Sequence record: PP408249.1
DNA length: 64,000 bases
Reading direction: 5' to 3' (one strand)
The notes below the pieces were generated by a model, which was not told the origin of the DNA, searched no databases, and was given only the letters and a program-made list of their open reading frames with translations. The stretch's first letter is position 1. The number at the start of each line of letters is the position of its first letter. This document shows positions 30,367-30,924 of this stretch, piece by piece. A program made the position numbers and the translations under genes.

Positions 30367-30443
30367 CCCTCGGTAGCTCAGTTGGTTAGAGCGCGCGACT
30401 CATAATCGCTAGGTCACTGGTTCGAATCCAGTTCGAGGGACCA
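30367..30443 (+). tRNA. tRNA with CAT anticodon (Ile2 or elongator Met), copy 1
   Basis: Cloverleaf, loop CT-CAT-AA, TTCGAAT, A73, encoded CCA; body resembles bacterial tRNA-Ile2; acceptor 5' CCCTCGG. Confidence 0.9.
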
Positions 30444-30465
30444 ATTTTAAGATGTTGTGCTTTTA

Positions 30466-30550
30466 GCCCGAGTGGTGAAATTGGTAGACACAGGAGACTT
30501 AAAATCTCCCGCTTCGCAGCGTACCGGTTCGAGTCCGGTCTCGGGTACCA
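30466..30550 (+). tRNA. tRNA-Leu(TAA), copy 1
   Basis: ggaga-CT-TAA-AA-tctcc, long variable arm, CCA. Confidence 0.95.
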
Positions 30551-30600
30551 AACAAAAGATATAAATACTTAACAAGATAGGAAACTATTCTAAAATTAAA

Positions 30601-30676
30601 TGGCTAGTAGCTCAGTTGGTAGAGCAAATGACTGTTAATCATTAGGTCGTAGGTTCGAGTCCTACCTAGCCAGCCA
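30601..30676 (+). tRNA. tRNA-Asn(GTT)
   Basis: aatga-CT-GTT-AA-tcatt, G73, CCA. Confidence 0.95.
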
Positions 30677-30702
30677 ATTACACTTTGTTGTATATTCAAT
30701 AT

Positions 30703-30778
30703 GCCGTCTTAGCTCAGCTGGTAGAGCAACTGACTTGTAATCAGTAGGTCGTGAGTTCGAATCCCACAGTCGGCACCA
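30703..30778 (+). tRNA. tRNA-Thr(TGT)
   Basis: ctga-CT-TGT-AA-tcag, CCA. Confidence 0.95.
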
Positions 30779-30847
30779 ATTTTAAATAACAGTTGTATCT
30801 AAAGAGATACAATAGTCTAAATAAAATATTCATATAATGTTTCAAAC

Positions 30848-30924
30848 GGGACTTTAGCTCAGTTGGTTAGAGCGCGCGACTCATAATCGCTAGGTCACTG
30901 GTTCGAATCCAGTAAGTCCCACCA
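30848..30924 (+). tRNA. tRNA with CAT anticodon (probably Ile2, lysidine-modified), copy 2
   Basis: Identical to copy 1 outside the acceptor stem; acceptor 5' GGGACTT; CCA. Confidence 0.9.

Follow-up and report, generated by a model that had tools for sequence, protein, structure and literature searches.

The closest described counterpart of the locus analyzed here is the bacterial pairing of tRNA-Ile2 with a type I TilS, as found in Escherichia coli, Burkholderia cenocepacia, and Pseudomonas aeruginosa. The tRNA has the same CUCAUAA anticodon loop and an Ile2-like body, and the enzyme has in common with the phage protein described below a PP-loop domain with all TilS motifs and the purpose of AUA decoding. 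However, the phage enzyme lacks both C-terminal domains (CTD1 and CTD2) and the two phage tRNAs lack the C4:G69 pair, while one of them, copy A, carries C1:G72, C2:G71, and C3:G70 in place of the G:C pairs of bacterial tRNA-Ile2. Type II TilS (Aquifex aeolicus, ~317 aa) and the B. cenocepacia construct BcTilS deltaCTD2 resemble the phage TilS in missing the acceptor-reading CTD2. Yet type II TilS retains CTD1, thought to read the anticodon stem, whereas the phage protein stops at the N-domain. How a TilS without an acceptor-reading domain separates tRNA-Ile2 from tRNA-Met is a question still open to TilS biochemists (PMC11947777).

With respect to phages, two reports (PMC13191261; PMC1524935) describe tRNA(CAU) genes of T4-like phages, a vibriophage, and Stx phages that are annotated as tRNA-Met and work as tRNA-Ile2, with k2C34 demonstrated by others, as cited there, in one vibriophage tRNA. 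Such phages depend on the TilS of their host and carry only one Ile2-type gene, in contrast to the two stem-swapped copies and the phage-encoded TilS of the present locus. TilS has been reported in phage MIJ3, without remark on its truncation or on CAU tRNA partners (PMC6892783), as well as in phage RsoM2USA (PMC8504454); the TilS of MIJ3 and PA5oct is the same gene as the one analyzed here. The PA5oct paper lists the CAU tRNAs as three tRNA-Met (PMC7318152). The N-domain-only state, the link to CAU tRNAs, and the twin stems are not noted in the MIJ3/PA5oct and RsoM2USA papers (PMC6892783, PMC8504454). What we add is a comparison of the stems with those of the host, and the association of CC-type tRNA(CAU), in which the acceptor stem starts with CC, with short TilS genes.

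Twin CAU tRNAs in a PA5oct-like jumbo phage

The window, that is, the whole stretch of 64,000 nucleotides under analysis, belongs to Pseudomonas phage vB_Pa-PAC2 (PP408249.1), a PA5oct-like jumbo phage whose host is P. aeruginosa. Its tRNA region matches that record at 100% identity and is 97.6-98.3% identical to that of PA5oct, MIJ3, Callisto, and other Wroclawvirus, and 95.5% identical to that of phage 30-2. The GC content of the window is 31%; the PA5oct paper reports 33% for its phage, compared with 66% in the host (PMC7318152). Twelve tRNAs were predicted in the window by ARAGORN, three of them with a CAT anticodon. The relevant features are as follows:

30303..30331, + strand: sigma-70-like promoter (TTGCAA-17-TATAAT, 10/12 consensus matches, a pattern match only), ahead of a block of six tRNAs
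30367..30443, + strand: tRNA(CAU) copy A, 77 nt, Ile2-like body, CC-type stem CCCUCGG, A73, encoded CCA
30466..30550, + strand: tRNA-Leu(UAA) copy 1 (ARAGORN), 67/85 identical to copy 2
30601..30778, + strand: tRNA-Asn(GUU) and tRNA-Thr(UGU) (ARAGORN), between the two CAU-Leu modules
30848..30924, + strand: tRNA(CAU) copy B, 77 nt, body as in A, stem GGGACUU
30975..31059, + strand: tRNA-Leu(UAA) copy 2 (ARAGORN)
31069..31098, + strand: intrinsic-terminator-like hairpin and T run (a pattern match only), closing the six-tRNA block
32979..33055, + strand: third tRNA(CAU), initiator-like, with a C1xA72 mismatch and G11:C24
40184..40795, + strand: one-domain TilS, 203 aa, with SGGIDS PP-loop, HxLDDxxET, RP, DPSN, and RNxIRH motifs and without CTD1 and CTD2

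Since a near-consensus promoter and a terminator-like hairpin flank the six tRNAs, A and B are probably co-transcribed. In the third CAU tRNA, two rather than three G:C pairs adjoin the anticodon loop (A29:U41).

A sequence-only reading of this DNA had described A and B as identical except for the acceptor stem, and direct comparison bears this out. Canonical positions 8-65 (59 nt) and the 3' ACCA are identical, while the acceptor stems (CCCTCGG/TCGAGGG in A, GGGACTT/AAGTCCC in B) are unrelated, with six of the seven pairs different and only C5:G68 in common. The complete stem of A reads C1:G72, C2:G71, C3:G70, U4:A69, C5:G68, G6:C67, and G7.U66. All 12 bases that differ fall within the 14 acceptor positions (Fisher p = 5e-12) and all 12 are transversions; moreover, pairs 1-4 of A (C:G, C:G, C:G, U:A) are the exact strand flip of those of B (G:C, G:C, G:C, A:U). 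Both twins fold as cloverleaves, with an anticodon stem of four pairs plus C27.U43. The sequences of A, B, and the third CAU tRNA are exactly the same in all eight Wroclawvirus genomes fetched, so that an assembly artefact can be discounted. RNA-seq contigs (four runs, one study) also contain the unique parts of both twins, a kind of evidence that speaks to presence only, being blind to levels, ends, and modification and compatible with DNA carry-over. As to the concern that one of the pair might not be expressed, neither is demonstrably silent by this measure of presence.

Probable isoleucine identity and codon demand

The twins are most likely both AUA-reading tRNA-Ile2, rather than one tRNA-Met and one tRNA-Ile. 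The Ile2-like character of the body, first noticed from the letters alone, is upheld by a search of 5,426 E. coli genomes, in which the best match of B is an annotated tRNA-Ile (87% identity). The CAU anticodon of the twins lies in a CUCAUAA loop; the loop of P. aeruginosa tRNA-Met is UUCAUAA, and its anticodon arm differs. The statement that ATA codons are very frequent proved correct as well: across 35 long window ORFs, ATA reaches 42.1 per 1000 codons, and it makes up 51% of Ile codons. TTA reaches 35.6 per 1000 in the phage, and the corresponding values in Pseudomonas loci are 1.7 (ATA) and 1.2 (TTA). These two codons have the largest phage/host ratios of all (about 21-23x), and the matching tRNAs are exactly the duplicated ones. 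ATG, on the other hand, is not over-used (19.7 per 1000 in the phage vs. 26.8 in Pseudomonas loci). In P. aeruginosa, AUA usage has been put at 0.9 per 1000, with none in highly expressed genes, and its type I enzyme, PaTilS, is ~17x less efficient than E. coli TilS (PMC12514573). The excess of ATA and TTA, the low host supply, and the lower ATG usage together indicate that the phage needs much more AUA capacity than its host offers, and not an extra Met elongator. No IleRS or MetRS was found among the genes of the phage.

A tRNA with an unmodified CAU anticodon is a MetRS substrate. This established property is one argument for the alternative in which A is an elongator tRNA-Met, never lysidinylated, and only B is tRNA-Ile2; the others are the C3:G70 and U4:A69 pairs of A, which occur in P. 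aeruginosa tRNA-Met, and the merely initiator-like nature of the other phage CAU tRNA. We nevertheless regard this alternative as unlikely. Pairs 3:70 and 4:69 are the only ones in A that match the host Met acceptor stem, and G2:C71 and A5:U68 of host tRNA-Met are missing. Of the two Met-type elements recognized in A by the sequence-only reading, both are indeed those of the P. aeruginosa elongator, but U4:A69 is not specifically Met-type in this host because host tRNA-Ile(GAU) has it too. Furthermore, the anticodon arm of A is that of B and differs from that of host tRNA-Met, so that a TilS consisting of the N-domain only, with no domain to tell the twins apart, could not spare A. Finally, the duplicated tRNAs serve the two most host-deficient codons, ATG falls below host usage, and CC-type tRNA(CAU) directly adjoin mini-TilS genes in other phages (see below). 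The proposal that one twin is a Met elongator is thus left without support on several counts. Nor does A resemble an initiator tRNA-fMet, its C1:G72 being a Watson-Crick pair.

One-domain TilS and acceptor-stem recognition

The truncated phage TilS is real. It matches PF01171 at 1.7e-36 and scores 131.4 bits with TIGR02432 (lysidine_TilS_N), against a cut-off of 93.6. In pairwise alignments, the protein corresponds to residues 26-228 of the Aquifex enzyme (317 aa), 22-219 of the Geobacillus enzyme (464 aa), and 16-200 of the E. coli enzyme (433 aa). Its AlphaFold model has a pLDDT of 94, and the best PDB matches of the model are TilS structures, with TM-scores of 0.79-0.83 (query-normalized). 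PF09179 (CTD1) and PF11734 (CTD2) are absent throughout the phage genome, and two huge phages that share this short TilS lack them too. Both domains are present in the 453-aa type I TilS encoded in the host genus. A C-terminal TilS domain split off into a neighboring gene was also considered and rejected, with no Pfam match in the five flanking ORFs and none genome-wide. Composed of the catalytic N-domain only, and lacking an acceptor-reading CTD, the enzyme is expected to treat the twins alike. In its own gene, 2 of 15 Ile codons are ATA, compared with 51% in the other ORFs of the window (P = 0.003), an avoidance that fits an enzyme that must precede good AUA reading.

Two observations concern the start of this gene. 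The TTG start at 40184 lies behind AAGGA, and the resulting N-terminus (MIKL...) agrees with the family consensus. The GenBank TilS CDS in PAC2 starts instead at window position 40259, at an internal ATG whose Met comes right after the SGGIDS PP-loop, and the annotated protein is consequently without its ATP-binding loop.

A much less favorable view of the 203-aa PP-loop protein is that it is not a working lysidine synthetase, and that the host TilS matures whichever twin it accepts. Engineered type I TilS without CTD2 is much less active than the wild type, having lost most of its activity (PMC11947777), and no activity has been published for the N-domain alone or for an enzyme without both CTDs. 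Still, the SGGxDS, DD..E, RP, D.SN, and R...R columns, and with them every motif of the TilS N-domain, do not vary among 30 family members, the score exceeds the curated TilS_N cut-off, a tRNA(CAU) adjoins the gene in 30 of 80 viral loci, and the family is large and under evident selection. We therefore consider a non-working enzyme very improbable.

With regard to the host, the acceptor stems of P. aeruginosa are GGGCCUA in tRNA-Ile2 and GGCUACA in tRNA-Met (PMC12514573 supplement). Both tRNA sequences, single-copy, were also found in 33/34 genomes of the Pseudomonas genus, and the stem of host tRNA-Ile(GAU) is GGGUCUG. The stem of B (GGGACUU) fits the host Ile consensus GGG[U/C]CU[G/A] at all five agreeing positions (1, 2, 3, 5, and 6). 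The acceptor pairs of type I TilS substrates are C4:G69 plus C5:G68 in E. coli, and C4:G69 plus G3:C70 in B. cenocepacia. Neither combination occurs in the twins, A having C3:G70, U4:A69, and C5:G68, and B having G3:C70, A4:U69, and C5:G68; such C4:G69-type pairs define the substrates of type I TilS and not AUA decoding as such. C4:G69 is in addition an IleRS identity element in E. coli, and its absence from both twins counts against the explanation that we favor. In B. cenocepacia type I TilS, inversion of G3:C70 to C3:G70 nearly abolishes activity, and deletion of CTD2 removes the 3:70 discrimination (PMC11947777). Copy A has C3:G70 and is thus predicted to be refractory to the host TilS. 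Copy B is without C4:G69 but keeps G3:C70 and C5:G68, and hence may be a weak substrate of the host enzyme.

The favored explanation, to which we assign a probability of about 0.6, is that both twins are tRNA-Ile2, that lysidine is formed mainly by the acceptor-blind phage TilS, and that the stem of A blocks the host TilS. The twins would be transcribed with a CAU anticodon, C34 would be converted to lysidine, and the host IleRS would then charge them for AUA reading. The CAU and Leu(UAA) tRNAs would have been duplicated because AUA and UUA are the codons that most exceed the supply of the GC-rich host. A phage TilS reduced to the N-domain would be limited to reading the anticodon arm, where the twins do not differ, and the acceptor stems would lie outside its view. 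Given the host-Ile-like stem of B, the host type I TilS could perhaps act weakly on this copy as well, whereas the flipped CC-type stem of A should block that enzyme and make A dependent on the phage one. The location of the TilS gene, 9.3 kb from the twins and not adjacent to them, counts against this explanation. The sequence-only reading had also offered a division of labor, with one twin specific for the host TilS and the other for the phage TilS. This idea retains some force, as the 3:70 inversion present in A kills type I TilS in vitro (PMC11947777), but the likelier split would be the phage TilS for both twins and the host TilS for B at most.

The reason for the flip is a separate matter. 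The CC flips fall at 1:72 and 2:71, which are not known contacts of type I TilS, and their tie to host-TilS avoidance is accordingly indirect. They might instead serve rejection by the host MetRS, or by another factor reading the top of the acceptor stem; PaMetRS disfavors tRNA-Ile2 80-fold via elements outside the anticodon. The twins amount to a natural experiment, in which one anticodon arm is joined to two unrelated acceptor stems and presented to an enzyme without both C-terminal domains. They allow direct tests of what the acceptor stem contributes to lysidinylation, methionylation, and isoleucylation, and cloning and assays of the host TilS, MetRS, and tRNAs have been reported (PMC12514573). 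The favored explanation would also account for the translation of a phage of 31-33% GC in a 66% GC host with minimal AUA capacity.

CC-type tRNA(CAU), short TilS, and the origin of the twins

Short TilS proteins form a large family, with 735 members of ~200 aa (E <= 1e-10), and are encoded at no fewer than 430 viral loci. In 30 of 80 short-TilS viral loci a tRNA(CAU) lies at most 300 nt away on the same strand. A scan for CC-type genes, in which a CAU tRNA starts with CC and conforms to the D-arm and loop pattern of the twins, yielded 19 distinct viral tRNA(CAU) with sound 7-bp stems. The discriminator is A in 18 of these, and one has the same 5' strand as copy A. A TilS-like ORF of 180-247 aa was present in the fetched locus for 6/19 CC-type but only 2/108 GG-type tRNAs among the matches listed (odds ratio 24, p = 1.2e-4), in a comparison of loci of unequal length and of related phages that are not independent samples. 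In one complete phage genome of 371,675 bp, the only CUCAUAA-loop tRNA found is CC-type and sits 81 nt upstream of the mini-TilS. Among viral sequences, the body most similar to that of the twins (56/59) likewise belongs to a CC-type tRNA(CAU), in IMGVR_UViG_3300042556_003130. This contig is phage-like, with a gp32-like ssDNA-binding protein, an HNH nuclease, a permuted tmRNA, and a tRNA-Thr(CGU).

The huge phages LR745206 and LR756502 (635-642 kb) encode short TilS proteins 42% identical to the phage TilS. Despite their many CAU tRNAs, no CAU twins with identical bodies were found in these two genomes. LR745206.1 (635 kb) combines a 195-aa TilS with about 58-61 tRNAs, of which two are tRNA-Ile(UAU). 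In this genome, a pair of CAU tRNAs (L066 2383-2457 and L070 652-726) have a common anticodon stem-loop and are otherwise different. At three further loci (L227 5615-5772, L228 9789-9946, and L299 9575-9984), two different CAU tRNAs are placed just upstream of the short TilS. The second of these represents a separate class, marked by an unusual D-arm (e.g., UAGUAUAAUUGGUGAAUGC) and a CUCAUAAA loop context.

The recurrence of the CC type near short TilS raises a bolder, still tentative possibility, namely that A is a naturally orthogonalized tRNA-Ile2 providing a private AUA channel for the phage, and that CC-type tRNA(CAU) and one-domain TilS form a widespread co-evolving pair. In such a case the flipped top (C1:G72 to U4:A69) would hide A from the host type I TilS, and perhaps from MetRS, while the acceptor-blind mini-TilS would still activate it. 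If true, CC-type tRNA(CAU) and one-domain TilS would constitute a third TilS architecture with its own recognition rules. The locus suggests such a phage-borne architecture, with hundreds of members, and may offer ready-made orthogonal tRNA/enzyme parts.

Phage tRNAs have been published as counter-measures to tRNA-targeting defenses. A defensive role could thus be imagined for A, with its flipped stem as protection from a host factor acting via the top of the acceptor stem (a tRNase, nucleotidyltransferase, or acetyltransferase toxin) and A itself as a defense-resistant spare. The concentration of the flips at pairs 1-4, beside the 3' end, and the recurrence of the CC type in unrelated phages would agree with such a role. 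However, no such host factor was identified in this analysis, and the association that we found is with TilS and not with defense genes. This scenario is accordingly far-fetched at present.

The arrangement of the two modules provides clues on how the twins arose. Each twin is followed by a tRNA-Leu(UAA), and the flanks of the two modules are unrelated. The Leu pair is 67/85 identical (21% diverged), and its acceptor stem, variable arm, and T stem show compensatory changes, thus indicating that the CAU-Leu duplication is old. The anticodon arms and D stems of the Leu pair are identical (one D-loop base differs), while 3/7 acceptor pairs and 2/5 T-stem pairs are changed, a pattern opposite to that of the CAU twins. 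An old duplication with identical CAU bodies requires either recent short-patch gene conversion or a mosaic origin. The identity extends to the T-arm, for which TilS recognition offers no explanation, a point against the favored reading.

In light of this, the twins might be equivalent tRNA-Ile2 whose stem difference has no function, a historical mosaic tolerated as nothing important reads these pairs. Such a mosaic could have arisen when short-patch conversion homogenized the bodies after an old CAU-Leu duplication, or when a body was copied into another tRNA frame. Apart from the diverged Leu pair beside identical CAU bodies and the unrelated flanks, it would explain why 12/12 changes are transversions, a pattern to be expected if the stems are unrelated and not the product of gradual divergence. 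Any conversion tract breaking stem pairing would be purged, leaving boundaries at structural edges. Nevertheless, at least 19 distinct viral tRNA(CAU) have a CC-type stem, with enrichment in the vicinity of short TilS genes, B agrees with the host Ile consensus at five of five conserved positions, and pairs 1-4 of A are exact flips of those of B. On balance, we view a functionless mosaic as a minority possibility, though a more serious one than a Met identity for A.

The search for a bacterial source of the body, using a 59-nt pattern with six free positions, gave 0 matches in the GTDB representatives (185,579 bacterial/archaeal species), and the only matches to this pattern were two short metagenome contigs. 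In a P. nitroreducens genome, a separate dense array of 11 atypical tRNA genes (G001:C1:49850-52876), among them an unusual CAU tRNA and a tRNA-Ile(GAU) of non-canonical sequence, resembles a tRNA island of a mobile element or prophage. The metagenome contig Ga0182230_1024412 (1 kb, 38% GC) carries a CAU tRNA, a Leu(UAA) tRNA, and another CAU tRNA in a row (348-694). The body of the second CAU tRNA is close to that of the twins and the body of the first is different, so this array may represent an "unconverted" version of the CAU-Leu module.
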